Source: Convolutriloba macropyga
Taxonomy: Eukaryota
NCBI RefSeq assembly: GCF_964194025.1
Contig: NC_134469.1
Location: forward strand, 76,012,001-76,076,000
Direction of reading: 5' to 3'
Length of the DNA: 64,000 nt
Shown: piece after piece, positions 10,101 through 61,200 of the stretch
Layout of the letters: every line of letters starts with the position of its first letter
How positions within the stretch are numbered: the first letter of the stretch is position 1
Notes under the pieces: model-generated
Database searches by the model: none
Seen by the model: only the letters and a program-made list of their open reading frames with translations
What the model was told of the DNA's origin: nothing
Position numbers and translations under genes: made by a program

Positions 10101-13100
10101 CATAGTAAATCATTGTAAAAACATGGCACGCGTGTCGGGGGGGGGGTGCAATTAATATGCACCCACTAAGCTGGGGGATGCACAATCGGAAAAGATCCAA
10201 CATCTACTATTGTAAAACACCTACAACAACTTGATACTTGTTTTTAATAGCCGAGAAGCTATAGCGGCTAATATTGGGGACATCGTGTTTTTTTAAATTC
10301 ATTGTCTCTATCGATGATTTTTAAACCTGACTTCTTGGAATTGAGTTTTTCAATGACTTCAGTGACTTCTACTGCTTTGCAGTTAACATTTGTGTGCGTG
10401 ACGTCATTTCTGTTATTAGATCAATTGTGTGACTTACCTCACTCGAAAAAAATGACATCTGAACTCACTTATGGAACTTTAAGTGTTATGAACATTTACT
10501 AGTTAAAGATCAATAGTGCGCATCTAAGTAGTGCCAAACCTATATGCCCCACTTCTTGATTATTAGACTTGAGTTTTTGATTTCGAACATCAATTTTGTA
10601 AAAGCTCTTTTAGGTCTTTTTTTCCTTATAGACCGTATATGTAATAAAATTGACTGTCCAAATATAACCCAAAAAGTCTAGTGGTCTGTTAAAGGACAGG
10701 TGGTCAATCTGTCTATCTTATTTCTGGAGTTGTTTCACTTCCATGGAAGGCTACAAGCGTGTATCGATGCTTTTTTTTGGAAGTCTGCTGGCTGTGTTCA
10801 GAAATAACCACTTTACGCATAATTATTGGCTAGTCACATTGAAAGTCTCGCATATTCCTTGGTCTCTTATTTATTACCCATATATTGAGCAGATTTTTGA
10901 CCAGAATTATGTTATCTTTATAAAGCTAAATTACTCAATTTGACCTTTGATCAGTTTTGAACTGCATATTTGCCATTTGACTGCAACTCGAAGCAATTAT
11001 TTTAAACGTGTTTTTCAAATTTTTGCTTGAACGATTTGCGCGTTTGTTCTAGAACATTCTCTGACTTCTCAAGTCTCAAGTGGCTTCTTCACGCTTGTCC
11101 TCTTCGTGTTTGATTGATCTCGATTGCTCACAAATTAATGTTTGCTGCTAAAATAAAAGCGATTGTATCATTGGAGATACAAGGGTATGATAGCCGAGTG
11201 GTTTAATGTTTCTGTCGAGTACTCCGGAGGTCGGGGAGTTGGAATGCTTTCCCTTTTCGCAGCCATGAAAAATTATCTAGGCTACATCCCCAGAAATATA
11301 CTGCCCGCCTGTATTTCGAGATCATATTGGTCCGTTATTGGTCGGTTTGTTTTGACCTGCGACCTGCAGAAGGGCTTTATATCCGAGCGCATTGAATCCC
11401 TGTACAGCTCGATGAAAGTTTTTGTAGACGTCAATATGTTTTAGAGCATAATCCGTTTTGAGTTTTTGGTTGTTAGCTTTTGGCTGCACGAATAATTGGA
11501 GGTTTTCCATCATTTTATGCCATAGCTTAAAAAGTAATGTTTAGGATTTCAAATACAATTTTTGATCTATTGAAAAAAATTGTATTGCTACTTTTATACC
11601 TTTGATGAAATCATGAAAAAAAGTTTGAGGGAATTAGAAACCTAAGAAGTTTCATACATTTAAACAAAATTCAAATTTTTCTTAAATGTTTGGATTCACA
11701 GAGAATTTCGTTTTTTTTGTCATGCAGATGAAAAACAGTGCAATAATTAGTCGGCTGTTAATGAACGATTGATATGAAAAAAGCAATTTAATACGGCAAC
11801 AATGTGATACCGGAGAACTTCGTTATGAAAAAGCACTTAAAGCTGAAATTTGTCGACTGTTGTTGAGTCTACTTACATTTTTGTGTTTCATGCATTTTTA
11901 ATTGCTCTCAAAAGAAGTTTGTAGCAATATTAGTCCTATGGTTTTTTATGTGATTTTTCGTCTGACCCATTTGAGTTTTAGTCCTCAAAAATGGGATAAA
12001 GGTAGCGCTTGGAGGGCATTAAGTGGCCGAGAAGCTCTCTTATAGCCGTAAACCTTACACCAACCATCCTTTCTTAGTCTTAAAGGTTTGACCCACCCTG
12101 TCATTCCCCCGCCCCTCAGTCACCCCAACCCCCTCCCCCAAAAGCCCCATCACTTGACCCCCCCCCCCCCCCCCAACGCTTGACCCCCCTCGCTCCGCTC
12201 ACACCCAACTGATGCATCCCTAAGCCCCAGCTGGCTACTACCGAAGCCCACCGATCGGCAGTCGTTTCAGAGCAATTCGCCCGAAGTTAGTCGGTTGTTC
12301 TTTTTTTTACTGTTGAGACCGTTTTATATCGGAGTTAGTCTAACCTCTTTTTTAAAGGCTGAATGGCGCACCAAAGTTTCTTCAAAAGTGAGCTGGAACA
12401 CAGCTGCGAAAAACTAAATGTTGGAAAGATTTAAAATAGGAAGCATCGGATAATTAGAAGTTGGCGAATTGGATGATTAAGCAAGTTTGACTGCGCTTTT
12501 GTCGATTACATCAAGAAACGTGACATAGTTCATACAGTTTCCGATATCAAACACAAATGTGGTAGTTTTTTCAGTAATTAGTGGAAACAATTTTATTTTC
12601 TTAACTTTTTATAGCTGCGAAGCTGTAAGCTGAGCGTAGCTATATTGCGGTGCTCTTGGTTCTTACGACTCGAAGAGGAGTATTGAGATTCTGCAGGTTT
12701 TTTAAAGCAGAAAGCAAGTTTGTTCATGACTTGAATTTTGACTTCTTTCTGTTCGACCATTAACCTCCGTTTTTGATTGTTGACTTCTGTTTTCGAACAT
12801 TGGACTTTAACAGTAGCTTCTTTTGTAATGTATAGTAATTAGGAACTGCTCATGATGTTCAAGGTGAAGAGGTCATTTTGAGATTTTTCGTATAAAAGTC
12901 ACCCCTAATTATCTAAATTACATCGCACAAACCCCCCACCACCTATCTACCCCCCCCCCCACCACCACCTATCTACCCCCACTTCCAACACCTACCTACC
13001 CCCCCCCCCTCCCCACCGCCCCCCGCACCCCCCCCCCCCCAAAAAAAAATCCACCATCTACCCCTACCCCCTCCCTTCACCTAACTACCCCCAACTATCC

Positions 13101-16100
13101 CAGCACTACCCACCTCCCCAACCTAGCTACCCACCCACCCCACCTAGCTCTCCCCGCACCTAAAAAATTGTCGGAATTTTTAAAACACTTGAATGTGGTT
13201 TGTTGGGCTACTTTTGTTTTTTCTCTTGTCTATCTCGATGTATTGATTTCGGTAAGATTAGGTTAGAGATTATAGTGCACGACGATTCGAGTCGTTTCCG
13301 GTATTTTACCGGCTATGTTTTTTTGTTTCGTCGTTTGACGCTCCATTTTCGTTTTACATTTGTTCTAGAACATTCTGGCTCGTCACTGCTTAAATGGTTT
13401 TTTCGCGCTTGATTTCACGCTTTCTGTGTGACCTAAATAGCGGTTATTCACAAGTTGTCTGATGCTTAAACAAAGTTGATTGTAAGTAAAAGATTGTATG
13501 GTCCGACTGCCGAGTGGTTAAGGAGACTGGCTGTTAATCAGATCGGCCGTTCGAGCCGAGGCAGTGAAACATTTTTTGCACCCAAAAACAACCTCCTTTG
13601 AATTAAAATTGTAAGTTTTATAGGCGGCGGCGATAACTTCTATCAACTCATTTCTGTATCTTATTCCATCTGTATTTTACTGCACGCAAGTCTATTTTGC
13701 AGCTATTCCGGCAATCTGCCGGCTATGTTTTGTATAGTTTTCTTTAAAAGGAACTAAAATTCTGATATAATGGGGGTCAGAATATCGAATTTTGATTTTA
13801 CAGAGATCTTTAATTGTAGTTTACCAACAGAGCACAACAATAAAATTGTCAAATTGCTTTTCAGAGTCAATTAATTTGGAGGACGAATTCGAATCAAAGG
13901 GACCGCCGAAGAAAGCAAATAAGGCTGATAAGAAAAAGAAAAACAAGAAAGGTCAACAAGATGATTTCTTTTGGGAAAACGAGGAAGCTGAAGCTCCTCC
14001 AGCAGAGGAAGCAGCAAGCGGCGAAAATATTTCAAAACCTAATAAGAAGGCAAATGAGAAACCAAAGCCTGGGGAAAAAGTGAAGCCAGTTGGAGATTCG
14101 GACGATAATGATGATGGCGATGAGTCCTCGACGTTTAAGAAGAAAGACGCGAAGAGCACAGCTGAGAAGAAAGCAGAGAAAAAGAAGAGAGACGCAGAGA
14201 AAAGGAGACTGGAGCGACAGAAAGAAGAAGAGAGGCTACAAAAACTTGCAGACCAACAGGCCAAACAGGTATTGAATTGCGTTATTTTGATCTTAAAATG
14301 TTTTTGCATGTCTCTATATGCTACTTTTTTTTTGCTTGACCCTAAAAACCTAGGAATGTAAGTTAAACGTTACTTGTAGTGACAAGGAAAGAATGACTTT
14401 TAGGATCTCAGGAAGGAGTTCGAAATTTTGGTCGGTTGACGCATACAATTTTCGGGCCATTGTACGAACAGTCCATTGTCTTAAGACCATTATAAATTGA
14501 GAAAGAAAAGATCGAATAGCAAAAACAAAATGCGGTTTTGAGTCTCGTGTTGAAATTGTATTGCTGCAATTACAAAAACGAAGCTCAAGTTTCAATCGGA
14601 TTGTGTTCTAGGAAGAGAAAGAGAAGGCGAAAAGAGCAGCAGCTGAAGAAGCAGAGCAGAGTGCTGCAACCACTGCTGTCGATCCAGCGGTTGGTGCTGT
14701 GCCAACTGAACCCGGGGATGAAGAGGGCCCTGGAAAGGGAGCTGCGGGCAAACAGGGCAAGAAGAAGGAAAAAGGCGGCAAGGGTGGATTAGGTGCTGCC
14801 GCTAAGAAGGCTCTTCAGGAGGAATTGGACCGTAAGAAGGCGGAAGAGGAAAGAATCAGGAAAGAAGAGGAAGAAAAGCTGCGGATAGCCGAGGAGATGA
14901 AACGACAACAGGAGGAGAAAGAAAGGTTGGATGAACAAACTATTTAAATGAACAATTTCTAATTGCATTTCTGATTTGATGAACAATTTCTAATTCCATT
15001 TCTGAGTGAATCAAAATGATTTCCGAGTGAGTGCATAATGTAGATCTCGGTCCATCCTGTATTCATCAAAGAAAAATATATTATAAAGTAATTTAGGTTC
15101 ACCTTTTAAAGTAATTATAGCAAAAGATGGGATAGTTTGTTTCCGTGGTCAGTATACTTCTACACATTCCCTTTTTGTGTAAATATTTCGTAGATTTTGC
15201 CGATTTTAGGAACAATATTGCTCTTTTTAGGTTGGAGAAAGAACGAAAGGAGAAGAAAAAGCAGCGAAAGAAGGAGGAAATTGCGAAACAGAAGGCGGAT
15301 GGAACTTATCTGACCAAATCGCAGAAAGAGGAGAAAGCACGACTGGAAGCAGCGAGACAAATGTTCTTACAAAGCGGTAATGTTAAAATCGCAGCTCTTG
15401 AAAAACAGCAGGAAACAGCTGATGGAAAGGAAAACAATAACAACAACAAAAACAGACAGAACAACCAGTTTCTGGCCCAGAAAAAGAAGCCAGGCAAGGG
15501 ACAGAAAGAGAAGGAGGATAAATTAATCGAAGAACAGAAAGCAGCGGAAGAGTTGAAGCTGAAAGAAATTGAAGAAGCCAAAAAGAAGGAACCCGAAGTT
15601 GTGGACAACTGGGAAGACCAGAGCGAAGATGAAGATTGGGAGAAGATGGATGAAAAGGATGGTGATGATATTAGCGAGAAGGGTTCTGATGAACTATCAT
15701 CAAAACAGTCGCAACAGGATAAAGTTGAAGCCCTGACTAATGGTTTGAAAGCTGTCAAGTTGGAGAACGGTCAGGTCCCGTCGAAAGAAGAGCCAGTTGA
15801 AGACAGTGAAAGCAGTGATGATGAGTCGAGGTTAAGCATTCGAACTATTTTATCAATTTTCTTTGAAATAACGATTTTATATTGGTTTCCATCAACCGTT
15901 ATATAATATATTTCGCCCACAAAAAGTTTCTAAGCTGCTCCCCCTCTAAATTAAATTGCTCTGCCTATCATTCGCGAGCAATTCTTTTGACGTTGATGGG
16001 TTTATATTTTAATTGTGTCACGACACAACTATGTAGTGAACAACTATTCGCGATTACTTTACGTATGTTCTTCAGTTCAAAAGGGTTTCAAATGTGTTGG

Positions 16101-19100
16101 ACATAATTACTTGTCTTCGACTATGTTTTAGTAAAATAACTGATAAATAGCTCTCAAATAAAGTTTGTAGCAATTATATCAGTCCTGCTGGTATTTTGAT
16201 GCAATTATTCGCTTGACCCTTTTAACTTTTTGTCCTCCGAAACTAACTGTTCGCGAGTCGTTTGAGAGCAATTCTACTGACTTTAGTAGATAATGTTTAC
16301 ATGCTCTCAATTAACTTTGTGTTTTGATCTGAAATGAAGGTTATAGCAATCTTATTGGTGATGTCGGCCTGTTTAATTGCTATCAAACGAAGTTGGTAGC
16401 AATTTATGCGATTTTTGGTTGATCGATTTTGTTTACTGACCTTTTGGCTGTTCAAGTTCACGCTTTTGACTGCTCGACTTCTTGATGTTTGCCTGATCTA
16501 AACTGATCTCATTTGGAATTTAAAGTGCCAACTTAAATGGCAGCGTTTTTACTAAAATTGATCGAAAATGTGCCAAAATCGTCTTCAGTTTCCATTCAAA
16601 ATCTTCCTACATCAATTAAGAGCTCAAATAACATTTTTAAAATGCTGGAATAACATTTGAGACCTGGAATTAAATCTTTTGTGGCCCTTATTGAATTAAT
16701 TGCACCGCTACAATATAACCAAGCTCCATCTGTTGTTCCAGTGCAATTCGTCCGACTGCTGTCTGTTTGGTTTTTTCGATACAATATTGATGACTTGTCA
16801 TAGCTTCATAAACCTCATAGCAGTAGTCCGCTATTGAACAACTTGTAGCACAACTTCAGACACCTCATAGCTGAAATCGATTTATTGATCGGTACAAAGG
16901 GATAGATAAATTTGTTTTTTTTGGCTTCCTTTGGTTTTATAACTCAGAGGCGTTATGGCTACCTTCTGTTTTTAATCTGTGACTTTTGTGGCCAAATTTG
17001 TTGGGTGGGCACCTGAAAATTGAAGAACAGAAGAGGCGGGCCAGATTGTGTACTTTATTCATGCCTTCTGCGAGTGCTACAAACGAGCAAATTTTTCCTT
17101 CCAATGGGATAACTTCAAAGCAAATTTGTTTTTATAGCTGCGAAGCTGTAAGCTGAGCGTAGCTATATTGCGGTGCTCTCGGTTTTTTTTTTGTTTCGTC
17201 GTCTGACGCTTCATTTTCGTTTTACATTTGTTCTAGAACATTCTGTCTCGTCACTGCTTAAATGACTTTTTCGCGCTTGATTTCACGCTTTCTGCGTGAC
17301 CTAAATTGCCGTTATTCAGAAACAGAATCTGTTCCTAAAACAAAGTTGATTGTAAGAAAACAGATTGTGTGGTCCGACAGCCGAGTGGTTAAAGCGACTG
17401 GCTGTTAATCCGGAGATCGCCGGTTCGAGACGCGACAGGGAAACTTTTTTTGCACCCAAAAACAACCTCCTTTGAAATAAACTTGTAAGTTTTATAGGCG
17501 GCGGCGATAACTATTATCAACTCACTTCTGTATCTTTTTCGACCTGTATTTTACGGCACGCAAGTCTATTTCGCAGCTATTCCGGCAATCTGCCGGCTAT
17601 GTTTTTTAATAGCAGACGTCAGCCTCTCAAACGGCTATTAATTAGGCGCCTTCCTTTTCTTACAATTCAAAGAAATTGAATTGTATTGGGGTGCTGTCTT
17701 TTTTTAAGATCTGTTCACACGTTTTCATGATTTTTGAAGGCAAATTGGAGTAGTGATTTTGGTCACGCCGAAACAAGAAGTGGAGCGGAAAAGCGAGTGG
17801 TTTTGCGGCGTGGGTTTTTTCGCTCTAATATTAAAGTAGAGTGAGAAAACGGTGTTTGAACAAAAATTTGCTTTCTCGCTACTGGCTTTTTGTTCACATG
17901 CGGCAATTTCACTTATTTTACACTTATGATTCTACTCTGATTTTACACTTTGATTTTACTTTTTTTTCAATTTTTTGGATCGGATTTTTTAAATGACTTT
18001 CTCAATCCATTCATAGTTCATTCTAGTCCTAATTTTTTGTTTCAACTAAATTTCCATTTCTTGCTAGTGGTTTTTTTGTTCACATGAGGCATTTTGACAT
18101 TGTTTTTCTGTTTTTTTAATTTTTTTGATCTGATTTTAAGAGGGTTTTTCCAATTCGCTCATAGTCCGTTTTAGGTCTAGATGTTTGTTTAGTCAAAGAA
18201 AATTCTTTGAATTGTGCGTCAGGACTTGTCCTGCTATGTTTTTTTTTTAATTCGCTTTACCTTTTGTTCACATGAGGCATTTTGACATTGTTTTTCTGTT
18301 TTTTTTTAAATTTTTTTGATCTGATTTTAAGAGGGTTTTTCCAATTCACTCATAGTCCGTTTTAGGTCTAGATGTTTGTTTAGTCAAAGAAAATTCTTTG
18401 AATTGTGCGTCAGGACTTGTCCTGCTATGTTTTTTTAATCCGCTTTACCTTTTGATCACGTTTTTCGTTTGACTTCTGACTTACCTCAATCACTGTTTCA
18501 ACTGAATTGTTTTTAAATGCATTCACTCAATGAATTATGCAACATAGTGAATACAGTCAAGGTCAAAAGAGCAAAATCAAAAATCAAATGCGATAAAGTC
18601 AAGTCATTGAGTCAGTGAGTGAGGAATAGGTTATCAAAGTTCATTAGAGTGTTTGCTAGATGACACTGGTAATAAGCTTATTAGCTTTCAGTTTAGAAGC
18701 TGAGTTAAGTATAGTTTTAGAATCCAACTGAAACTGCAGGCCGAATTAGAACACTTCTTGACACTGAAAAAATAGAAATTGGGTCATTTTATCTCCTCTT
18801 TTTTCTTTCTCTGGTTCAATCCCGATGTGCATCAAGCGCGTCAACGGTGGCTATTTTCTGACAATCTGCCGGCTATGTTTTAAATTTGATTGCTCTCACA
18901 CAAAGTTTGTGGCAATTAATTTAAACGTGTTTGTTTTGTGCAAAAATGTTTTGCTTGAATGTTTTCTGGAACATTTTTTCATTTCACTTCCTGACTGACT
19001 TATTCACGCTTGACTTTCAAAGGTTTTTTGAGTGATTTGAATTGCTAGCATTTTGAAAATGTCTGCCAAAAGAAAACTGATTGTGAGAAATGACTGTAAA

Positions 19101-22100
19101 TATCCCGTGTAGCGTAGAGTTTAGTAACCCGACTCTCATGCACATTGAGTCCCACCCTGGTCCGAATTTTTCGCACCATAGAATTTTCTCTAACCTATTC
19201 CTACTTCTACATTGTTTGCCTCACCAGTTTGTCAGACGTTGGTCTGTTTACGTTTTCACTAAATGATAGCACTACGCAATATTTTTTAGTATTTAGTTCG
19301 GTCCGCTGTTCTCTTTTGACTATTGGTGCGTCGAAGTTTTGTCTAAGCAGTGCATTATTTCTACAATTCTCAAATTTAGCAGTGTGAAGTCAACTGTAAA
19401 TGTTCTTGAACACAGTTCTTAGCCATCTTTTCTGAGGACTATTTCGAGGCCACCAAGCTGTGGCATTATCTTTCAAGAGTTTTGCATCTTCTGGGATTTA
19501 AGATTTTTTTGGTGCATATTATTTGCTCCCCCAATCACACGTGCCATATATGCCATTTATAGGTTGTATATGGGTTATATAGGTTTCTTGTATGCACATT
19601 TATTGTCGTGGTCAATAACACGGGTCAAAGATTTCACTAAGTTGAATTTTAAATTAAATTTTGAACTGAAAATATGCAAAAATTAGCTTGTATTTATAGT
19701 AGTTATCTATTCGAAAATGTACAGAGAAAATTTAGATTAGCTAAAATTATTTTACATGATTGGCATATGAATAGATCTTAACTCCGAATCCCGGAGGTGA
19801 TTTTCTATTTTCATCAACATTTCATGAGAATCATATATGGCTTGGGTACAATCGAGTTCATTAGTTGGAGGTCGGTTGATGTTAGAATCAGGTTTCTGTT
19901 GGTGGGAGAATTAAATTCTGACATATGATTGATGGGTCAATAAGATAATGGTAGCACCAAAACAAAATTAGAATTGAGTTTAGTTTTGTGGCGATTACTT
20001 ATCGACACAGCAATAAAGTTCGTCAGGTAAATTCTTTTTTGGTTGAAACTTTAATAAAGAAAACGTCAAAGTTTCTTGATGTTTCTTTGAAACCATCACA
20101 TCCTCCCTCCCTTTTTGAGCAAGTTTGTGGGTATAGGTTCTCCAAATCTGTCGGGTTGTTTTCTGTTTCTTGTCGATGTTCGTGAAGGCTCTGAGGTTTT
20201 GGGTTGTTGGTGCTGTGCAGATGATATGGCTGCAGAAGCTTCATCTTGAAGTGAAGGTCCCACATCTGTGTTCTGAAGTTGTTGTTCTGATTGAGATATA
20301 GTCTCCTCCACTGCTGGTTCAGTTTTCACATTGTCCTGGTCTAGTCTCGCAATTTGGTTGTCGCCCACTAGAATAGTCCGTGCTGAGTTTTCGGGCTGTC
20401 TGAAAGATGTGTTGAAGCCCTTCCTGATGATGAAGGTAGCAGGAACTGTCTTTGTCTTTTCGTTGGCCTTGAATAGAATGGGTTCGCACAAGTCGAAATC
20501 TGCTATGGCTGGTAGTTTCACTCTGCGTCCCAACAAGAGTTCCACTGGAGTTTTGCCTCTCGTCTTTGAAGTGTTGCGATGTGTCATCAGTGCCCTTTGC
20601 AGGAATGCTCCAAATGACACATTAAGGTTGGGACTCCACGCTTGAAGTGCCCGCTTCACTGTCTGAACTGCTCTTTCAGCTAGTCCATTAGCTCTTGGAT
20701 GATAGACGGGTGATTCCATTTTCTTAATTGCCAGCGATTCAAGCCACTGTTTAAGGTCACCACTTACAAATTCAGGACCATTATCAGATACTAAAGTTTT
20801 TGGTATTTCAAATCTTGCAAAGATTTGACTAAGATATATTTTTTTCTGTTTCTGATGTCCTATTTCCCGCGGGGAAAGCTTCTATCCAACCAGAACCCGC
20901 ATAAACAATTGCGCATCGACATTGCCTTGGTCCTTAACATAACCCCAGTCTATGTGGAACCGTTCCCAAACGTCGGCTTCTGGCCACTTAGAGAGTGTTT
21001 TTCCCTGGCTAGGCCTGTTCAATTGACAATTCTTACATTTACTAGCAAAGTGTTGAACGTCTTGGGTAATGCCAGGCCACCATGCTATCATTCTGACTGA
21101 TGCCTCGGTTGCATTCTTCCCGGGATGTGTCTCATGTGCTTTTGACAAAACCAAGTGTCGTAATTTGGGTGGAAAGGAACACCTCTGAAGATGATTCCAT
21201 TATGTAAAGTAAGTCCATCTTTCTGTCTTTCGAATCCTTTTTCCGCTTCTGAACGTTGTTTCCAATTGCCGCTTTTGATTCGTTTCATTATGTCCTCGAA
21301 GAGTCTGTTTGTTCCAAGTTCAGTTTTTATTGCTGCTTTGGTCACCAAATCATTCTGGGCGAAGTAAATGTTATTGATTGCGAAGCACACTCGATCGTTT
21401 TCCGATTCGTCTTCGTCAAAATCCATTCTGCTCAAAGCATCTGCATGGGATATCTGCTCTGCTGGTGTGTACTTCAACTCATAGTCGAAACCCATTAGAG
21501 CTATTGCCCATCGTGATTCTCGCTGATGCTGTCTTGGGGATGATCTCCTCGTCTGTCTTGGGGATGATCTCCTCGTCTGGTGCAAAGAGATATTTGAGTG
21601 CTTTGTGGTCAGTCTGTAGGGTAAATCGTCTTCTAAGAGGGAATTGCTTAAGTCTTGTGACCACAAACACAATTGCCAGTGCTTCCCGCTCTATGTTCGA
21701 GTAGTTTTGCTCCGCTGGAGTCAATTTTCTCGATACATATATGACTGGATGTCCTTCTTGCGAAGGAACCCCGCCATTGGCTTTTTCAGAGGCGTCAGTA
21801 GTAACTGTTGCTGCTTTTTTTAGACTATATGGCTGTACTGGTGGGTTAGCACAATTCATTTTTTATGTCTTTAATGGCTTTTTGTTGCATTTTGCCCCAT
21901 CAGAAATCGCTATTTCTCATGTTATTTAAGGGTAGCATTTTTGTTGCAAAATCAGGTATCATTTTTCCGTAAAAATTAGCTAGCCCAACAAACGATTCGA
22001 GTTGTTTTTTGTTAGTTGGTGCTTTTGCGTTTTTTTTAAACATGTTTGGGATCTGGTGCTATTCCCTCCTTTGAAATGGAGTATCCCAAAAAGCTAACGC

Positions 22101-25100: not shown

Positions 25101-28100
25101 TGTCGACACTGGTGGGTTCACTTATCACCTTAGCAACAAATTGATTAAAATTTGGCTCATTACATGAAGCGTTTTGAACAAAACAAGAGTTTAAGATCAC
25201 CGTAGTTTGGGTTAAATTTAACTCAAGAAGGGCGGGCGCGCGTACATAAAAGTTTAATACCCCGTACATTTTTCTTGATTTTTGACAAATTCAAAGCGCG
25301 TACTTTTGAACCTAATTTTGGGTTTGGGGATGCAGGGTGCATATAAGATAATATTGAGTCACGGGCTTCGCGGGAGATTCAAACAGATTTAAACGATAGT
25401 TTGAATTATCAGGAAAGACGAAGATCCTGGACAAAATTAGAAGGTTTAAACGATAGTTTGAATTATCAGGAAAGACGAAGATCCTGGACAAAATTAGAAG
25501 GACCAACGTGCAAGACGGTGAGGCTGGAGGGATCACGCAGCAGATTGGTGCCACTAACATGCCCCAGTTTGCGATCACTGAGTGGAGCAAGTCGGCTAAT
25601 GTCAAGGGATTTGACGAGAGCACCCTGAAGCTCCCGGGATTCCTAGTTATTGATACCCCAGGTGTGAATACGAACCTCCTATTTTGTTCTTGTCGGCTAA
25701 CAGAAAACACTATCAAATTAGATAGATTATCAAATAGATATAGGCTCCCTATTTCTTAAGAAGGCTTTTGAGCGATTTAGTTGATCATGTTCCTAAATTT
25801 AGTAGTTTTTTAGGAGTTTTAGTTTAGGATTTTGTTTTTTTTTGTTAATCAAACAATATTAAAATTTTTTCCTGATGTTCTTCTCTTTCTGCTAGCCACA
25901 TTTGTTTGCAGGTTTTTGTGAGCCCGAGTTTTTTTGCGGAAATTGAAAATGAAAGAGCACCTTTTGTAGTTTTCTCCAACTAACCATTTCATTCATGGTT
26001 TAGACGTCTTTTTCTTCAATTAATTTGTCCTTGTGAAGATAATCAACAGGTGCTCTTTGAAGGCTTTGTTTGAGCCATTGTTAACTCTGGTTATGATTCC
26101 GCATGGTTGAGTTTCACTGTGCTTTAAAAGTCTCCAGCAAAAATTTGACAATGGTCAGCGATGATCGTATGCTTAGCATTTTAATGCTGAATAGAAATGT
26201 TGAAAATCACTTTTTGTAACAACAGGCCACGAATCTTTCACAAACTTGAGAACAAGGGGATCTTCTCTGTGTGATCTGGCAATTTTGGTTGTCGATATCA
26301 TGCATGGACTGGAACCTCAGACCCTGGAATCGATTCAGCTTCTCAAGAATCGACAGGCGCCCTTCGTAATTGCGTTAAACAAAATTGATCGTCTGTTCGA
26401 GTGGAAATCGAACCCGAACCAGGACATCAGAGACACAATTAAGCGACAGAAGAAACATACAAAGGATGAGTTTGAAACGCGTTTGAAGCAGGTGATCGCT
26501 GAGTTTGCCGAAAAATGTGAACTGAATGTGGTCCCATTTTGGGAGAACGAGGATCCTGCAACCTACGTGTCAATTTGTCCAACTTCTGCGCATACAGGTA
26601 TGTTGAATATTGCTTGTTCGTACAACTGCGCATTTAATTCAAGGTTTTTTTTAGTTAACTATGACTTAGTCTTATCCCTCAACTATAGATCTGATAGATC
26701 ATCGGTTCAATTTAAAAATCTCAATTTTGAGGTGTCAGGTTTGTTGAAATCTCTGGTTTTTGATGAAGCTTCTAAAAGTTACTAAGAATGCATTTCCTTT
26801 ATAGAAATGCAACCAACGTTATATCTTTTTTTGCATTTTTCCGAGTTCGTTAACCCAGTACGTATAACCCCAGCTGTGACTCAAAAGATATTTTTAATCA
26901 GAAACGTTAAATTTTTCTTTCGATGGAGATATTTTTCATTTGAAAGAGATTTGATTATACAGAATGATAAGCTGGTACTCGACATGTACTATAATGTGCT
27001 CTATAGGTGATGGGATGGGCAACATGATCTGGTACATGGTGACATTCTGTCAGAGCTTCCTGAAGAAGCGATTGGCCTACAGAACTGAGCCACAGGCCAC
27101 AGTGCTTGAAGTCAAAGAAATCCAAGGACTGGGCACTACTATCGACGTCATCCTCGGTAAGATATTTTAAGATAAATTCAACTACGCTGTCATATAATCT
27201 TTAAACTGCAAGGAATCGATAGCTAAGGGGAATGGAACTTTTTCTAGTCTCTTTAGCTCGTGATTTGGCGTTTTGATAACGGCTTGTCTGCCTAATAAAG
27301 GTAAAATTAGTACTTATAGTAATTGACTGCTATAAAACAGCAAGACTAATAATTTTTCAAATAATATTTGCTTTCCATTGCGAGAAATTGAATATTTCCT
27401 ACACCGTTTCCATAATTTCAACAATTGACCAAATACCAATTGGCAGCTAAGACTACTTGATTTGAAATTTTTGTCTCTAAGATAGAAGGTTGTTTTAGTG
27501 AACGGACGCTTGAAAGAGGGTGTGCCAATTGTCGTCGCTGGCTACGAGGGTCCTATTCAGACTTATGTGAAGGCTTTGTTGGTGCCACCTGCAATGAAGG
27601 AGCTCCGTGTAAAAAATCAATATGATAAAGTCAAACAGGTAAGTGTATCTAACTTTCTAAATCAATGCTTCGCATGTGATTGAAAGAAATCTGTAAGATC
27701 AATAGACGTGAGACAATACTCAAAGTTATTATTTATCTGATTTTGTATTTTTTAAGACGCATCATCATATTATTGTCCTCTTATATGTTAGAGTATTTGA
27801 TCTTCACTCATTTTGGCTTCCATTATTAGGATTTAGGTGACTTCCTTTTATAACCCATCTCAATTTTCTGGCGTCTAGCGCGCCGACCACATATTTGCAA
27901 GCTCGATCTAATTAACATTATTTACCGACTTCTGTTTTCGAATATTGGGCTTTTGTAGTAATTCAGTTCCTAGTGTAAGCTAACGAGGAAGTGATGTTAA
28001 TAGCAGTCATTTAAGATTGGACCACTAAACGGTACTATTGAGCTCATTCCGCCAATCTGTCCCCCACCCGTTGGTAAGATTAGTCTAGCGTTTCTATTGT

Positions 28101-31100: not shown

Positions 31101-34100
31101 GTCTAGATTCATTTATACCTCCGAAGAATTAACAGGATCTTTGACTGGGGACAATAAGTCATTTAACTACAAAAGGGATAACAAATGAAAGCAAAAATTC
31201 AAGATGTACATAAAAAAATTTTTACGAAAACAATTGGTCAGAGCCACAAAAACTATGAGCTTATTCTGAAACTATCAAGATCAGCCCAGATGTTACTGCG
31301 CGTCTAACAAATTACTAATTTTTTTCAAATTGTTGCAAAAAAGATGAATTTTCAAATTGTTGCAAAAAAGATGTAGCTCGTTTGTCAGCTTAAAAAGAAA
31401 ATGATTGCATTTTTAAGGTATCTACTTACAGCAAATTTAAAATAATTGGGCTAAGAAAGCAAATCTGATCCCGAAAAAAAAATGGAATTTTGAAAAATTT
31501 AGTAAAAATTCTAACAAAAAACTCAGACCTAAGAATTCTGCAACCCTTCCCTATCTTTAGAGATAAAATCAATAACACTACAGCAAAAAATTTGAACAAA
31601 TTTTTGCAAAATTGACGAAAATTAGGTCAAAAATACCAAAAATGTGAAAACATGAATTACGTCAATTATTCACAAAACTTTAAACATCGATAACTCCCTA
31701 TCAAAAGGGAAAATCGAAAAAATCTTTTTTATTCCAAATTCTACACTGTACGGGCTTTTTAATGATACCACTCACAACTTTCTACGATGATTATATCGAT
31801 CGGCCAAAATTGTCTGAACAAAAAATAACCCATTTGAGTATATAGTTCCTCCCCCACTAAAGTGGGTCGGAACAACAAACTCTGAAGACGTTGACCTTCA
31901 GTGTTTTGAAGCTTGGGGAAATTTACCCCAGTGAGATTGTAAGCGTGTCGTAAACTGTCAAAGCGCACAGGACCCAGAAAGTAACTGAAAACGAATATTC
32001 CCATTTTGTAAAACACAAAGTCAAATGAAAATTTAATTACTGTTTCTTTTTAAAATTGGGAGTGCTTGAACCAAAATTTCTTGCCTATATTTTTGACTGA
32101 ATCAAACAAGGTTTGAATAAAATTCCCAGACAATGCAAAAACTGAAATAGAAAATTTATTTTCTTTGAATGATTCTCTTTCGCTTGTTTAAAAAGTCTTC
32201 GCCAGCAACACATGCATAATTTATTAAATCAATAGTGCAAACCATTTTGGTTTTCATTTTTTCATTTTGGAGATTGGATGTGTCAATTGTTTGGGAGATT
32301 AAAAGCGATAAGGCACTTTAAAGATTGGAACTAATATCTGTCAAAAAAGTAACATTTGGAACGTTATAAAATTTCATTGACAATTATTATTTAATCGGAA
32401 CTAATGAATTTTTTTCCGTTTCTTCTGTTGGCGATCATCTATTGTAAAATGCATCATGTTGATTTTAAAAAAAAATTATCCAAAAAAGTATTTCGGAAAA
32501 CAAATGAATCAGTTAACAACCTTGAGGGGGCGTATTGATACCTTCTGTGCTGTGCACACTTGAAGGATTCCGGGTTGGTTCTTAACTTGGAAACAAAATT
32601 TGTAGCAGTTATATCAGTCTTGCGCTCTATTTTTATGCGGTTTTTGCTCGGCCGATTTTTTGTCTGACCTTTTGACTTTTTGTCCTCTAAAATGGGATAA
32701 CCAGGTAACGCCCAGAGGGCATTAAGTTCTTTATACCGTATGCGATCCACTGATTCCGTTTTCGAGACATAAAATCATTGCGTGAAGGAAGGTTCCTAAC
32801 CATGTTCTCTCCTCTTCCCTACTTCACCTTCCGTTGCCCAGCGCTCTGTAACCCCTTATGAGTCCGCACACCCACGCACTTCCTCTCTGCCCCCCCCCCC
32901 CACCGCGCTCATCTCATGCCCCTTTAATTAAGCTAAAACTAGCATCCCTAAACCGTAGCTAGCTACTGAAGCCAACGGCTCGCTAGTTGTTTGAGAGCAA
33001 TTCGCCCGACGTTAGTTGGTTATGTTTAATAGCCGCCCTCATCTTCTTAGCAGGCTTTCATTGCGCTGCTATTGATTTTGTTTACTTCGTCGGATAAAAA
33101 TTTATTTTGCTTTACCTCATTTTGCCGCTCTTCCGACATTTTCCGGGAAAGCGTTTTGACTTATCAAGACTAGTTGCTCAGCAAAGCAATCTAAATGAGT
33201 GGCGTCATGAAAACAAAATCAAGAATAGAAATGGGATAAAAACGTAAAGCCCATTTTTAGTTGCCTGATAGTTCAACTTTGCTCTTCTAAGTCTTAGTTA
33301 CCATCTCCTATGCGTATTGGTTTTGATAGTAGCATTTGTATCCTCTCAACAAGAAGCAGGAGTATATCTAACAGTGGAATGAAATCAAAATTGTTCGCAC
33401 TTAAAAATTTTGTTGGACAAAAATGATTGATGTACTAGCAAAATTTTTTAAGTGCAAACAATTTTGATTTCATTCCACTGTTAGACATACCTCTGCTTCT
33501 TGAGAGGATACAAAGGATAGTATCAAAACCAATAAGCATACGAGATGGTAAGTAAGACTTATAAGAGCAAAGTTAAACTATTTCTTCTGTTCTGTCAATC
33601 CTAATCGGGTTTATGGGAAGCAGTAGCGGATATTTCCCGGCAATCGGCTGGTTATGATAACCCAATTTTAAATTATTATAAAACTCTGTTTAGTTGTTGT
33701 CGCCTGTTTATTTTGGATTGATTGATTCCAAACCATCAATTTTTGGTTGTTGCGGTAAAACGACAGATGTTCCTTTTCCATAAATATTTTTAAAACACAA
33801 GGAGTCCCATTTTCCTCTTTCAAAACAAAAGTTTCCAAACTGAACACATGTATCGTCTTTTTACGGGGTTGAGGATTGGATGACTTCAGGGAAATTTTGG
33901 TTATAGGTGCGAGCTGCGACTGGTGTGAAAATCCTGGCTAAAGACGTGGAGAAGGCGTTGGCTGGAATGCCGATGCTGGTTGCAGCCAGAACTGACGAGC
34001 AAGAGTTACTTACGGAGGAAATGGAGAAGATACTAGCCAGTATGATTTCGTCAATCAAACTCAATGACAGAGGCGTATACGTGCAGGCATCTACGCTTGG

Positions 34101-37450: not shown

Positions 37451-37494
<44 letters not shown>

Positions 37495-40400
37495 GACGCA
37501 GTATTAGTTAAGGAATGTTTTGTACTAGGTAGTTGAATAATAGTTACTCACAGAGTACACTTAGTTGTTTTTGTTCACTTTACTTTTTTGTTTCAGGGTG
37601 AATGCAAATCGGGGTACTGATTTCAGTCACCACCAAACTAAAATGAGCAAAAATACAGTAGTAATAGTTCGTAGTTTTTTTTAATAGCCGCCCTCCTTAT
37701 TGTGCTCCTTTTTTTACAATTCAAAGAATTAGAATTTGAATCGAGTGGTTTTACGGCGTGAAATTTTTTTACTTTAACTTTAAGTTTCCCGCAATTGCTT
37801 TCTGAACAAATTGTTTATTTTTTGGGAGATTTGGCTTTAGAAGTTTCTCGCAGTATTAGTTAAAGAATGTTATGTACTAGTTACTTGAATAATAGTTGGT
37901 CACAGAGTACACTGTTGTTTTTGTTCACTTTACTTTTTTGTTTCAAGGAGAAGGCAAATCTGAGTACTGATTCAGTCACCACAAAAGTAAAATGAGCAAA
38001 AAGAGTAGTAATAATTCGTAGTTTATTTAATAGCCGCCCTCAGCCGGCTATTATTACGCTCTTTTTACAATTCAAAGAATTAGAATTTGAATCGAGTGGT
38101 TTTGCGGCGTGAAATTTTTTCATTTTAATTTTAAAGTAGAATGTGCAAAAATTCGCTTTCTCACTAGTGGTTTTTTTTTCGTTCACACACCGTATTTTGA
38201 CATTGATTTTGTTTTTTTTTTTATTTTTTGATCTGATTTTTCTGGAAATGGTTTTCTCAATTCACTCATAGTCCGTTCTAGGTCTAGGAGTCGCCTGGAC
38301 TTTTCCTGCTTTGTTGTTTTTACTTCGTCGAAAAAAAATTTATCGCTTTACCTTAGTTCCCAGCTTGTTCAACATTTTGCGTGAAATCTTTTTGACTTCG
38401 CTAGGTTAGTTTCACTCTTCTCTCATTCTGCTAAAAGTGTTTTTAATTGCTCTTGAACGAAGTTCATAGCAATTATTGTAAACGTGTGGGCCTTTTTAAT
38501 GCAAATTTTTCGCTGGACAATTTTGCTAGAACATTCATTGACTGCTCAACTGACTTTTTTACGCTTTCGTTCATCATTTTTGAGTGATCTCTATTGTTCT
38601 CTCCGAAGTAAAGCTTGTTGCTAATATATAATCGGTTGCTGTTTAGGATAATCAGTGAAACATGTCGCAGTGGTTAGTGGGGGTGGCTCTGGATCGGGAG
38701 GTCAAGGGTCGAATCCCGTCGAGGCCAAGGTTTTTTGCACCCATAAAGAAAATGATTTAGGCCACAGAGCTTGAATTAAATCGCCTCGCCTGTCGTTCAA
38801 GAGCAATTCTTCCGATATTTGTCGGTTTATGTTTAGACAGCAGTTGCTCAGCAACGCATTTCAAAATGAACAGAGTCAGTAGTCAGTATCAAAAAACGAA
38901 ATCAGAAATAGAAACGGGATAAATCCTTAAAGTCCAATTTTAGATGCCCATTACTCAAACTGTTTTCGTAGTTACCATCTCTAATTCTTATTGGTAGCGA
39001 TACTAGCCCTTGTGTTGTCTCACTACGATGCACGAGTATGTTCAGCTCCAAAATAACATCAAAATAGTTCGCACTTTAAAATTCTTTGTGTATAAATTTT
39101 TTTTTGTCATTAGTTTTTTCTCTTCTTTCAATCCCAATTTTGGTTATGGGAATCAACGGTGGCTGTTTTCCGAGAATCTGCCTGGTATATTTTAAATTGT
39201 TCTCGAAAAACTTTGAAGCGATTATTGTAAATGTGTGTCTATGCTATTTTTTTTCTCTTGATCTTTTGAACCGGATGGCATTAACGTCGAGGAGACTTAG
39301 AACCTTATGCTTTTAATAGTCTCCAGGTAGCCGAATCACTGACACTGTTGAAGAGACGTAAATAATTCAGGGTTTGAGTGGCGGCTCTTGCAAAGTTACC
39401 CTTACTCTACATCCTTACTCCACATCTACCTCATTCTAACTAGCCTGTAAGCTCGGCTCCCTTGAGACGCCCCATCCCTTTTGCTTAAAAAATCTTTTTA
39501 GTTGCTCTTGGACAAAGTTCATAGGAATTAGTTTAAATGTGTTGGTCTTTTTTATGCAATTTTTTTGCTTGACCGGTTTTGCGCTTTTTTCTAGAACATT
39601 GTTTGACTTCTCAAGTGACTTTTTCACGCTTTCGTTCTTCATTTTTGAGTGATCTCTATTGCTATCACTCCGAAGTAAAGCTTGTTGCTAATAAAATATC
39701 GGTAGCAGCATAGCATCAATTAGGGACTGATGGCCGAGTAGGTAGTGCTTCTGGTTTGGAATCGGGACGTTAAGGGTTTGTATCGCCGAGTGGTCAAATT
39801 TTTTTCCATTCGCTTGTCGTTCGAGAGCAATTCTTGCGACATTAATCAGTTTATTATAGCTGCGAAGCTGTAAGCTGAGCGGAGCTATATTGCGGTGCTC
39901 TTGGTTTTTGATTTGAATTATATTGGGGCGCTGTCTTTTTTAAGATTTTTGCAACTGGTTTTTCCAATTCACTTGAATTGTACGTCAGGACTTGTCATGC
40001 TATAGTTTTGTAAGATGTTCACACATTTTCATGATTTTTGAAGTCAAATTGGAGTAGTGATTTTGGTCACACCGAAACAGGAAGTGGAGAGAAAAAGCGA
40101 GTGGATTTGCAGCGTGAATTTTTTTCGCTCAAAGTTTAAAGTGGAGTGAGAAAACGGTGTTTGAACAGAAATTCGCTTTCTCGCTAGTGGTTTTTTGTTC
40201 ATATACAGCAATTTCACTTTGATTTTTACTGTTTTTTATAATTTTTTGGATAGGATTTTTTTCTAAATGGTTTTTCCAATCTATTCATAGTCCGTTCTAG
40301 GTCTAGTTTTCTGTTTAGTCAGTGAAAATTCTTTGAATTGTATGTCAGGACTTGTCCTGCTATGTTTTTTTGTTTCGTCGTCTGACGCTCTTTTTTCGTT

Positions 40401-45038: not shown

Positions 45039-45404
45039 AGTGTTTTTTTTAAATATAAGTGGAGTGTTTTTTCCTGAATCTGCTTAAATTTAATTTATGC
45101 GTAGTCGGCAAGTGACAAATTATTCAAGAAGATCAAGTGATAATATTGTTGTTGCGAATTGTATGTCTGTGGTCTAACTTTAAATAATGCAATTGTAATT
45201 TGTCGGTTTTTAAACCCTTATATTTTGAAGCAAGAAACATTTAAAAACCGACAAATTACAATTGCATTATTCAAAGTTAGACCACAGACATACAATTCGC
45301 AACAACAATATTATCACTTGAATAATTTGTCATTTGCCGACTACGCATAAATTAAATTTGAGCAGATTCAGGAAAAAACACTCCACTTATATTAAAAAAA
45401 CACT
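45039..45404. repeat. Long near-perfect palindrome (arms ~165-175 bp, 25-nt spacer)
   Basis: 45039-45214 is the reverse complement of 45240-45404 apart from one 9-bp indel and a few mismatches. Confidence 0.93.
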
Positions 45405-54183: not shown

Positions 54184-54673
54184 TTGTTTTATGCGAATTT
54201 TTTGTTTAACCGTTTTTGTGTTCACGAATATGCTTTCGCTCGTTTGAACAATTTGACATTGCTTCAGAAGAAACGGGATAAACTGGTTGAGCCCGAGGGC
54301 ATTAAGTTGTTTTGTAGTTCTTTTAGAAGAGCCTTAGTAGGTTCTAAGTGTTTGGTTCGCCGAAGCAGCTGAGTGAGAATGGCAATTGTTTAAGTTTTAC
54401 CACCTCCTCTCCTATTTCCGAGTGAGCTAGCGAAAACCAAAACAACCCCCTCGCCAGTCGTGCAAAAGCAATTCGTCCGACAGTAGTTGGTTGTTTAGTG
54501 TATGTCAACGCCAACGCATAAATTAAGTGATGCAAAGAATTTAACAGTCCTATTTTCAGCCTATTTATCCATTTTCGCCATGTTATGCCTATCAAATAAT
54601 TTTGTTATTCAATGTTCCTCTACACTGATGGTAGTTAATAAAACATGCAACTGAACTGTTTTTCAGATTAATA

Positions 54674-57326: not shown

Positions 57327-57754
57327 TGTTCCAAATTTGCCTGGAGCGATTAAAATACGTGGGTGATAAAATGTTTCTACTACATTATCAACAATAATTT
57401 TTTTCGAACTGCGACTAAATGGTAATACCTGCAGTTCAAATTAACGTGAAAACGGGTGCTTGTGTTTCGTAAATAGAAGTGTGAACGTTTTTCCAATTAG
57501 ATTTTCAGTTCTTGAACATCTGCTGCTGAATGTATTGACCTTATTTGGTGGAGGGAGTTTGTTCAAATATTTTATGGAGTAATAACTGAAATCGTTTCAG
57601 ATTGTTTTTGCAGTGAGAGAGCGTGTCATCTGTAGAAGTTTCTGGAACCATGTCCGAACAAATAATGCTGAGATTTTGTATGTTTGAATGACATTCTTTC
57701 TGCAGTCGACACACATGCAGAGATCTTTTTGTATCGGGTTTTTAATTGGTCAAA

Positions 57755-58240
57755 ATGTCAACCAATGGCGTTTCGAGTGATGTGTTCCACCTTCTATACG
57801 AATCAGAAGACGATGACGACGAATTTGAACTTAACAATCGAACACAATACGCAAAAGCACCCCTTATTAACCACAACAACAATCACCGGAATGCAAAATC
57901 TCTTTTCAAGACAGGGCCGCCAAATAGCCACCCGGTATTGCCTTCAGAACCTCCCGTCAACATGCTTCCTAATGACTCAGTCACAGTGGCCTCAAGAAAT
58001 GGTATTATCAAGATCCCCAAGGGTACCATGCCCCCGTCCATGGTTCGAAGCCGCTCCTCGGGAAAAGTTGCCGAGACGAGTTTCTTCGGAGCTGATTCGA
58101 TGCAGGGCGACGGTGTGCGCATCTCACGCGATTGCATGCAACAGGCGGAAGAGGCGGCTATGGAGGCAGATAGCTTTGTATATAAGAAGATGCACCCTAC
58201 GGACACAATACAGGGCATTGCGTTGCAGTATCACACAACA
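57755..58240 (+). CDS. First coding exon of a LysM-domain protein (LYSMD3/LYSMD4-like); gene continues beyond the window
   Basis: ATG at 57755; acidic EDDDDEFELNNR motif resembling LYSMD3 EEDAEVYELR; ends in the LysM start FVYKKMHPTDTIQGIALQYHTT followed by a strong donor GTAAGT at 58241. No downstream exon was found in the window. Confidence 0.75.
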
Positions 58241-58275
58241 GTAAGTTACATTTTCTGTTCAGTATGTATTTTACT

Positions 58276-61200
58276 AATTGCTCTCAAACGAAGTTTGTAG
58301 TTAGTCCTGTCGGTCTTTTTTTGCGATTTTTCGCTTGACCGATTTTTCGTCTGACCCATTTGACTTTTCGTCCTCATGGGATAAACATGTAAAATGGGAT
58401 AAACAGGTAGCGCCAAGCGGGCATTAAGTGCTCATAGAACCTTTCAGCTCAAACTCAGACTTATACTTATGGCGTGAAGGGAGGTTCTTAGAGGTTAAAG
58501 ACCCCTCTACTGTTGACCCCCCGCGCTGTTACCCCCCACCCCACTGTTGGCCCACCTCCGCCCATCAGCCCTCGGTGCACCCCCCCCCCCCCCGTTTCTA
58601 GCTACTGACGAACAACCGCTCGCCCAAAAGACGCAAATTTATACTATTTTGCACAATTTTCGTGAAAATTTTTGAAAATTTGAAAATTTTTGACATTTTT
58701 TAATCTTTATCAGCCCTAGGTGTCAAGGAACCTCCTCCATGTTTTAGTAATAGGTTACTGTATAGTTTCTAGTGGCAACGGAACGGTTTCAACATTTTAA
58801 CAATAAGTTACTGACAAATTTTTATTGGCCATTGATCAGTTTTTCAAATTTTTATTGTCACAAATTTTAGCAATTTTTTGATAAAACTTGCTTTTTTCAA
58901 ATTTTTTGAAAATTTTGTCTTTTTTAAGGTTTTTCAGCCTCATGAGGCAAGGAACTTCCTCTACGGTTTGAAAATATAAATTCAAACTGTATAACTTTTA
59001 GACCTCTGTTAGGGTCTGATAATAAGATACTGGAAAATTTTTGTTGGTCATGGATTAATTTTCAACTTTTTAATATCACAAGATTTACCAATTTTTTTCT
59101 TAGCTCTTGCAATTTTTTTTAGGTTTTTCAAAATTTTTTGCCATATTTAGGTTTATCTAGCCTCAAGATTCACGAAACTTCCTCTTGGGTTTGATAAAAT
59201 TTTACTGCATAATTTATAGATGTAACGGAATGGTTTTCAAGATTTTAATATTACGAATAAAGGCAATTTTTTAAAAGGTTCGCTTTTCTTTCATTTTTTT
59301 TATTTTTTTCCGGCAACAGGGGCCCTGAGACCTCCTCCAGGGTTTGACAATAAATTGCTGCTTAGTTCTGGAGTTAATGGAATGGTGATCAATATTTTTT
59401 ATGACTCAAAATTCTCGTAATTTCTTCAAATTTTCGGAAAATTTTTATGTTCCAAGTGTATAGATCTTTGAGCCAATGAAAATATTTCTTGCTTGAAACA
59501 GGGATACTGGATAGTCTCTTGAGACAAATAAATGGTTTTCAAGATATTAATATCTTGAATATCAGCAAATATGTAATGAATGTTTAGCAAAATTTGCAAT
59601 TTTTCCAACACTTTTCAACCTTATTGTCCTTTTATTTAACGACCTATTCTGGCCAACGAAACTTTTCAATTCTTGGAGATAGGTTAGTTGAAATTAGTTT
59701 CAAGACAAAAAATAGTTTTTAACTTTTTTTGCCAAGTTGAAAACTTTTGTTTTTAATCTTGCCTTTTTGTTTTTCTATATGAGTTATTTACTAACAGGGC
59801 TAGAAAACTAGAAGTTGCAGAGTCGAATCCCATCATGGAAAATTGTCCGATCTCTCTTTCTCTCTCTCTCTCTGTCGGTTAAGGTTCTCTCCTTTTATTC
59901 CTCGTTCACGTTTTATCTCTCTCTCTCTCGCTCTCTCTCTCTCTCTATGTTGATGCCGCACTTCAACTGCTGTTATGTGGCGTAATGTCATCATCTCTGA
60001 CCCTCATTAACAATGAGTTATAGTGGAAATGTTTTTATCATAAATGACCTAACAGGCACTTTTTAGGAACTCATTGATAATTGCTCTCTAAAGCAATTTG
60101 TAGCAAATATATTAATCCTGTTCGTCTCTTTTATGCAGTTTTTTGCTTGGCAGATTTTTCTTCTGACCCATTTGACTTTCTTCTTCCGAACCGGGATAAA
60201 GAGATAGCCCCTAGTTTGCATAAAGTTCTCTTAGAGCCTTTCAGCCCACTAGTCGTCAAATATGCGATTAACAGAAACTGTTTTGGAGACTTATACTTAT
60301 GGTGTGAAGGACGGTTCTTAGAAATTGATCCCACCCACCCACTGCCCCCAGATCAGCCCCCCCCCATCCTTTTTTGCAGCCCCGGTGCTGTGCACCAATC
60401 CGCTCTGCGCTCAAGTCCCTTCAATTAATCTAAAGCTAGTCTCATAAACCGTGGCTAGCTACTGACGAAGCAAACCGCTCTCCGGTCGTTTGAGAGCTAT
60501 TCGCCCTACGTTAGTGAGTTATGTTGTTAATTGCTCTCGAATGGGAAGCAATTATTGTAAACATGTGTGCCTTGTTTATGCAAATTTTTTGCTTGACCGT
60601 TTTGCGGTTTTCTTTTAGAATAACCTTTAGACTTCTCAAGTGACTTTTTCACGCACTTCTTTTTGATTTTTGAGTGGTTTCAATTGCTCTCACTCCGAAA
60701 TAAAGTTTGTTGTTCAAACAAAACCGATTGTTTGCCGATGACAAGGCCATAATAGCTGAGTGGTTAATAACTCTATCGAGGTGGTGGAATCGGACTCAAG
60801 AGGTAGGTGTTTGCACCCGACCTTAGTCTGTTGTTTTTGCAACCATAAAGAAAAATTTATTTGAGCTACAGCCCCTGAATTAAATTGCCCGCCTGTCATT
60901 CGAGGTCAATTTTTCCGACGTTAGTCGGTCTATGTCAGTGTCTAAGTACCTGCACCAATACAAATTTTTCCGACTCATTATTGTGGACAGGAACAATATA
61001 CCCAAAGATCATTTTTTTACCAAAAAATGTGGCCGATCAATATAGCACGTAGAGAACTGTTAGTGTTAACATTAGTAAGCAGGCCGAGGTTCAATTTTAA
61101 TTACAGGATATCTAGGATTTGATATTGTTGTGGAATCATTGATTTGGAGTTTACTAAATTTTCGGTAATATTTCTTTATAGCATTTACTCCTGCTGCTGC

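Follow-up and report, generated by a model that had tools for sequence, protein, structure and literature searches.

A HINE-like transposon superfamily of Convolutriloba macropyga that was probably built around a single, anciently captured tRNA gene

In the genome of Convolutriloba macropyga (1.18 Gb; NCBI RefSeq assembly GCF_964194025.1), a stretch of 64,000 nt near 76 Mb on contig 2 (NC_134469.1, positions 76,012,001 to 76,076,000 of the forward strand; this whole stretch is called the window here, and positions are counted from its first letter) contains seven copies of one repeated module, each of which holds a short tRNA-like insert at the same internal site. The question raised by this locus is how inserts that look so different from each other came to occupy a common position. 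The initial annotation of the window answered it with a swappable slot, i.e. with mobile elements in which different tRNA genes or promoters are taken up or swapped time and again. We consider a simpler history to be the probable one (roughly 0.7): the ancestor of a superfamily of HINE-like rolling-circle transposons would have captured one tRNA gene long ago, which was then inherited vertically and has decayed since, without any swapping.

The seven stretches can be aligned across ~280 columns, the length of the module being 250–290 bp. Common to all of them are the upstream blocks TTCACGCTT...GAGTGAT...ATTGC...GATTGT and, downstream, TTTTTGCACC(C)A.AAA (T-run, GCACC(C)A.AAA). An nhmmer profile made from the seven-copy alignment recovered exactly these seven full-length matches from the window (E 1e-43 to 1e-70), all of them on the + strand; no module match was obtained on the minus strand in that search. 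Both the positions of the copies and the general description of the inserts given initially (70–90 nt, with a run of T4–T7, an A box that begins at position 8 and, in most copies, a B box) are thereby borne out.

The nature of the carrier is best seen in family A, of which a complete young copy of ~470 bp lies at 17134..17603 (+ strand). Its borders follow from an alignment of 30 genomic copies of this type (98% identity), because similarity between the copies stops at these ends; it begins at ATAGCTGCGAAG after T-rich DNA and ends after ...CCGGCAATCTGCCGGCTATGTT. The 5′ subterminal inverted repeat (subTIR), ATAGCTGCGAA at 17134–17144, has its reverse complement, TTCGCAGCTAT (11 bp), at 17570–17580, and a second small inverted repeat adjoins the 5′ subTIR. 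The 3′ subTIR is followed by the hairpin CCGGCAATCTGCCGG at 17582–17596 (CCGGCA-ATC-TGCCGG, 6-bp stem), 7 nt from the 3′ end, and by the terminal CTATGTT at 17597–17603. At the 16 readable + strand loci of the alignment no target-site duplication is visible; T-rich DNA precedes the 5′ end, and ...CTATGTT is followed by unrelated sequence at the 3′ end. The element (17134–17603) contains no open reading frame and has no coding capacity. B-type elements follow the same plan in other letters: ATTGCTCTCA is paired with TGAGAGCAAT, and the hairpin CCGACGTTAGTCGG is followed by TTATGTT, the family-B 3′ palindrome being CCGAC-GTTA-GTCGG. Carriers are ~375–475 bp long, with the 3′ copy of the subTIR 24–34 nt from the element end, and 12 such 3′ ends (a hairpin and CTATG) lie in the window versus 0 expected by chance.

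This anatomy has a known counterpart. Helentron-associated non-autonomous elements (HINEs, DINE-1-like) are short and non-coding, with subTIRs of 11–15 bp, of which the 5′ one stands a few nt from the terminus, a short palindrome (5–10 bp stem) ~8–35 bp from the 3′ terminus, a second inverted repeat beside the 5′ subTIR, and T-rich or TT insertion sites without duplication; they are very numerous, and a genome has more than one family of them (Thomas, Vadnagara and Pritham 2014; PMC4067079). The carriers share with them the subTIRs (~11–15 bp), the 3′ palindrome, the second inverted repeat, the T-rich targets without target-site duplication, the copy number and the multiplicity of families; their 3′ subTIR lies somewhat nearer to the end than in mite HINEs, for which 38–60 bp are given (PMC4067079). 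They are, accordingly, non-autonomous Helentron/Helitron2-type (HINE-like) elements, which agrees with the rolling-circle type assigned to them before, and motif searches of the window likewise support the earlier statement that the module occurs under two kinds of termini, A-type and B-type. Where the carriers depart from known HINEs is in the interior: that of HINEs is described as a core plus microsatellites or central tandem repeats, and the word tRNA is absent from that paper (PMC4067079); the core of the carriers instead holds a whole unit derived from a tRNA gene, with A box, B box and terminator.

The tRNA origin of this unit is evident from the slot part of the module profile (positions ~97–189), which matches real tRNA genes of the genome, among them those for Thr, Arg and Lys, at E 1e-8 to 7e-10. 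Aligned with real tRNA-Thr, the family-A slot reaches a best local score of 46–51 (shuffled sequences: mean 18, sd 2) and 63% identity over 73 nt. The profile match spans tRNA position 1 through the T-run, from which it follows that the insert would be a tRNA gene in its entirety, terminator included, that was taken up as DNA; in the slots the T-run comes directly after tRNA position 73, as it does in the real tRNA genes of the genome. Structure tells otherwise about function. Only 6–14 of the 21 cloverleaf pairs are kept in the slots (11 of 21 in the family-A unit) versus 16–21 of 21 in real tRNAs within the same alignment. Acceptor stems are broken, as had been observed, with 0–3 of 7 pairs kept, and this is already the case in the young family-A consensus; furthermore, none of the seven slots folds more stably than shuffled sequences (z −1.75 to +1.4). 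ARAGORN found 0 tRNA genes in the window, and the Rfam tRNA model RF00005 gave no match at E <= 10 in the whole window, in a 201-base stretch or in 20 loci; since neither program recognises any slot, the slots are not assignable to isotypes, and the isotype calls made initially by eye are not confirmed. The slot, in short, is tRNA-derived by sequence and is not a functional tRNA by structure. Copies of these elements probably account for a large share of the 88,012 rough first-look tRNA candidates of the genome. Two loci (L042, L043) had appeared to contain real tRNA genes inside such elements; these candidates were rejected, as the flank matches there rest on T-runs and A-rich sequence only.

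If tRNA genes had been captured or exchanged repeatedly at this site, the slot classes would stem from different tRNAs, and this can be examined by comparing slots with flanks. For the comparison, 69 full-length module copies were gathered from the window and 90 loci (~350 kb in total); 34 family-A copies were reduced to three plus the window's own copy before alignment, and all the rest were aligned. The alignment comprises the families A, A′, B1, B2, B3, B4 and B5, which fall into four slot classes (A, B1, B2/3/5 and B4). Slot and flank distance matrices are correlated (Mantel r = 0.65), with 0 of 2000 permutations as high. The nearest neighbour of a copy belongs to the same family by slot as by flank for A, A′, B1 and B4; B2, B3 and B5 interchange as slot neighbours, and the flanks of these three are equally close to each other. 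Among the aligned copies, there was no case of one slot class shared by flank families that are unrelated. Slot classes are therefore congruent with flank families, which speaks against the proposed exchange and makes it decidedly unlikely.

The observation from which the idea of a swappable slot arose, namely that the inserts differ more than their flanks, stands for the B-type families (flank distance 0.18–0.40, slot distance 0.33–0.58) and does not for A versus B, where slot and flank distances are both ~0.45. That slots are far more heterogeneous genome-wide than flanks is confirmed by DNA-type contigs of two public runs of the organism, which were matched to positions 38480–39900 at 80% likeness (four public runs were found, stored as contigs, and none on record is of RNA): summed contig depth is 1e5–1e6 over the flank blocks versus ~9e3–1.3e4 at slot 38656 and ~2e3 at slot 39724, a drop of 10–400-fold. 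Inside slot 38656 one position differs at a 30% share (among 40 of 112 rows listed), suggesting that the 38656 slot is a family-level variant; that at 39724 is rare. Such heterogeneity is what exchange would predict, but most of the slot excess can apparently be put down to a GC-rich piece mutating faster within an AT-rich genome and to weaker constraint, because an excess exists already inside a single family. When within-family differences are taken as post-insertion decay, identity to the consensus in the old B4 family is 0.79 for the slot versus 0.83–0.86 for the flanks, and pairwise distance is 0.34 versus 0.26, a divergence ratio of 1.3; between families the ratio ranges from 0.8 to 1.7 and is ~1 for A versus B.

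The distribution of variability along the module points in the same direction. Mean identity between slot classes is 0.66 in the far upstream block, 0.70 in the near upstream block, 0.37 in the 18-nt leader, 0.67 in the 5′ third of the tRNA, 0.53 in its centre, 0.49 in its 3′ third, and 0.78 in the T-run plus trailer. The most variable block is thus the leader, which lies outside the tRNA body, and the third containing the A box is kept as well as the flanks, so variability is not limited to a tRNA-shaped cassette. Judged from the alignment, the pattern is a mosaic of constraint along one sequence and no tRNA-shaped replacement. Homology is unbroken across both slot borders, and two parts that are no universal tRNA feature recur across classes, a 5′ part reading GG.CC.GA.AGCCGAGTGGTTAA and a 3′ part reading CC.TCC.TAGTC.GAA ahead of the T-run. 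The strings that were thought to identify different isotypes, GGCTGTTAATC, GGCTCTGGATC and GACTCTCATCC, occupy the same alignment columns and differ by 3–5 substitutions in 11. In favour of exchange, family A does display a loop of 7 nt, CTGTTAA, which contains a GTT triplet and is enclosed by a 4-bp stem in A′; still, no class, not even the young family-A consensus, has an intact acceptor stem or a tRNA score, unlike a fresh capture.

What the slot retains are DNA-level features of a type-2 RNA polymerase III (Pol III) unit, taken here as an A box TRGCNNAGTGG, a B box GGTTCGANNCC 30–60 nt downstream, and a terminator of T4 or more. The family-A unit (17371..17451, + strand) has the A box CAGCCGAGTGG at 17378–17388, which is insert position 8, a gap of 33 nt, the B box GGTTCGAGACG at 17422–17432, and twelve nt further on a T7 run at 17445–17451; the B4 consensus has the A box TAGCGTAGAGG and a perfect B box, GGTTCGAACCC. 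Together with the profile match to real tRNA genes, these features uphold the original description of the insert as tRNA-derived with A box, B box and oligo-T. A block rich in A and T, which in B4 reads TAAAATAAAA and lies at −36 to −27 relative to the start of the tRNA, is well kept, and boxes and block together would amount to a type-2 Pol III layout with a TATA-like element. Among class representatives, the T-run with GCACC is the most conserved block (0.91), and the A box (0.88) is within the top 5% of 11-column windows; the rest of the slot stands at 0.68 and the flanks at 0.72.

Do these boxes do anything for the host? It might keep dispersed copies as insulators or as genes for small RNAs, and A box, B box and T-run are indeed recognisable in most copies, of which there are thousands. 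However, 24 old B4 copies agree with their consensus to 0.80 in the A box, 0.77 in the B box, 0.71 in the rest of the slot and 0.77 in the flanks; inserted copies look neutral, since their boxes have fared no better than the flanks. Between subfamilies, A box and T-run are conserved above the average and the B box is average; within the old B4 copies the boxes show no such excess. As the window also contains copies with broken B boxes (e.g., copy 11184, where it reads AGTTGGAATGC) and the predicted RNAs lack a stable fold, host selection on dispersed copies, including their mass use as insulators, is very unlikely. Use by the elements themselves is a different matter: the blocks best kept at the DNA level suggest that source copies may still bind TFIIIC/Pol III. 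A stronger version, in which the unit would be an active Pol III/TFIIIC module that helps the elements (through open chromatin at source copies or through small RNAs) and in which leader, centre and 3′ third would be hypervariable owing to diversifying selection or repeated conversion, appears unlikely.

Loss of the cloverleaf with internal promoter boxes still recognisable is also typical of the heads of tRNA-derived short interspersed elements (SINEs), which raises the possibility that a SINE landed in the ancestral element, or that SINE/rolling-circle chimeras move through RNA. But the T-run stands directly after tRNA position 73, as in real tRNA genes, and a transcript would therefore stop short of the element's 3′ end. 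There is, moreover, no SINE body, no A-rich tail or tail derived from a long interspersed element (LINE), and no target-site duplication; the unit lies 237 nt inside the element, away from its 5′ end, and has its own terminator at once, and the element has Helentron termini, ending in a hairpin plus CTATGTT. A SINE origin is extremely improbable on these grounds.

Several observations do weigh against descent from a single capture. The comparison of slots with flanks covered ~40 copies from 350 kb, in which B1, B2, B3 and B5 are represented by one to three decayed copies each. Slot identity between the four classes (0.45–0.6) is no higher than that between unrelated real tRNAs (0.41–0.65), so that slot distance, taken alone, is compatible with old replacements. 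B1 slots, and only these, diverge 2.1 times faster than their flanks, above the neutral ratio. The B box, at 0.74 among class representatives, is conserved to an average degree only. Finally, an autonomous Helentron (Rep/helicase with endonuclease) with the A or B termini is a putative partner so far; Helitron_like_N domains have 90 matches genome-wide, and open frames of ~2500 aa contain some of these. At columns variable among tRNAs, identity is 0.36 between slots, 0.28 between slots and tRNAs, and 0.20 between tRNAs, a noisy measure with just 14 qualifying columns.

Single capture followed by decay could then have proceeded as follows. The seven copies are members of a single large superfamily of short HINE-like rolling-circle transposons (non-autonomous, Helentron/Helitron2 type), whose ancestor would have captured one complete host tRNA gene as DNA, body and own oligo-T terminator included. 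All subfamilies, with A-type as with B-type termini, would have received the captured piece by vertical inheritance. Features that matter at the RNA level (cloverleaf, acceptor stem, anticodon arm) would have decayed, and the GC-rich segment presumably mutates faster than its AT-rich flanks, so that the slot came to resemble a different cassette in each subfamily. What the subfamilies keep best are the A/T block (approximately −36 to −27), the A box and the T-run with GCACC and, with less clarity, the B box; source copies may use these to bind TFIIIC/Pol III, while inserted copies would decay neutrally.

The remaining module copies of the window, all on the + strand, differ in age and state of preservation. 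The family-A′ element (12611..13729; 5′ motif at 12611, unit at 13500–13577, 3′ hairpin at 13708–13727) shares ~89–94% of flank positions and 85% of slot positions with family A, and has been enlarged to 1.1 kb by C-rich low-complexity insertions; long tracts of this kind (poly-C with CCACC/CTACC motifs) are found in or beside it at 12050–12200 and 12890–13140. The B4-type element (18881..19255; unit at 19103–19171, 3′ hairpin CAGACGTTGGTCTG) belongs to an old family with ~70–75% identity to its relatives, as estimated from an alignment with 24 of them. A B-type module of class B3 lies at 11087..11354 (unit at 11184–11257). Of the two B1-type modules, the one at 38557..38834 (unit at 38656–38736) reaches the element end at 38834, past which many of the contigs matched to this region diverge; the other (39622..39854; unit at 39724–39805) has a partly deleted downstream flank, and a family-A 5′ end follows directly 3′ of it at 39856. 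The B2-type module (60646..60936; unit at 60746–60838) carries an internal insertion of 12 nt within the unit, which measures 16 nt in one relative (locus L087) and is common to those two. The last 284 bp of this element (60657–60940) recur at 76076152–76076435 and 76079496–76079779 of contig 2 with 99–100% identity, 3.6 and 6.9 kb on and just past the window, a sign that this stretch was duplicated locally, in tandem and recently, the period being ~3.3–3.6 kb.

Genome-wide, first-look candidates, whose counts are lower bounds, number at least 875 for family A, at least 550 for the 19103 type (B4), at least 3196 for the 38656 type (B1; full-length matches at 83–85%) and at least 3495 for the 60746 type (B2; 81–85%). 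Within the window, all 12 Helentron-type 3′ ends and all seven modules, spread over 59 kb (4863–63766), point the same way, on the + strand; for the 3′ ends the chance of this is ~5e-4, and nesting and local duplication account for part of the orientation. A third kind of 3′ end, with the hairpin CAGGACTTGTCCTG followed by CTATGTT, closes 190-bp tandem units at 18219–18245 and 18409–18436 and suggests a further Helentron-type family without the tRNA-like module. No transposon protein was found by Pfam among nine open reading frames of the window, the sole match being a piece of an eIF5B-like GTPase: an exon-sized open frame at 26246–26785 has an EF-Tu-type GTP-binding domain (E 1e-15). Near-perfect long hairpins at 33356–33496 and 45186–45268 match, on either strand and with scores below the cut-offs, models of microRNA precursors from plants and animals; they look like fold-back palindromes or palindromes of the miniature inverted-repeat transposable element (MITE) type and unlike microRNA genes.

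Arrays of tRNA genes were encountered elsewhere in the genome. On contig 13 (31.10–31.23 Mb; loci L033–L040 and L053), a large tandem array with a ~275-bp period consists of tRNA-Thr-type genes, whose bodies are nearly the same throughout and whose anticodons are AGT, TGT and CGT as well as TCT (Arg) and AGA (Ser). Tandem arrays on contig 15 (4.79–4.83 Mb; L037, L038, L052) and contig 7 (44.05–44.10 Mb; L047–L051) likewise combine one tRNA body with anticodons that are shifted. There, a body of Cys type is found with GCA or with GGA (“Ser”, at least 10 copies), and a Lys-TTT body with TTA (stop-reading, 4 copies) or TTG (Gln). The genes of the arrays on contigs 15 and 7 may be pseudogenes or anticodon-shifted tRNAs.

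Capture and amplification of host DNA is expected for HINEs also (PMC4067079). Like other Helitrons and Helentrons that have captured genes, the carriers described here amplify host DNA inside non-autonomous rolling-circle copies. Captures reported for these transposons mostly concern parts of protein-coding genes and are confined to a single family; here, it is a small Pol III gene that sits at a homologous position across a diverged superfamily. Another parallel is provided by the Cassandra elements of plants, terminal-repeat retrotransposons in miniature (TRIM), which have Pol III (type 1) sequences derived from 5S rRNA in their long terminal repeats (LTRs); there, too, a non-autonomous mobile family carries and conserves a segment derived from a Pol III gene, but the present carriers are rolling-circle DNA elements of an animal, and the promoter is that of a tRNA (type 2). 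No description of a tRNA-derived unit in Helentrons or HINEs was found in full-text literature searches. While the anatomy of HINEs is already known, a HINE superfamily built around one captured tRNA gene would be new.

In many invertebrate genomes, few repeats are as abundant as non-autonomous elements of the Helentron type. For C. macropyga, the copies should be masked ahead of any annotation of tRNA genes or SINEs. If source copies do recruit TFIIIC/Pol III, a DNA transposon would be exploiting host machinery in a way that is new, and its spread would have seeded thousands of potential TFIIIC sites across the 1.18-Gb genome.

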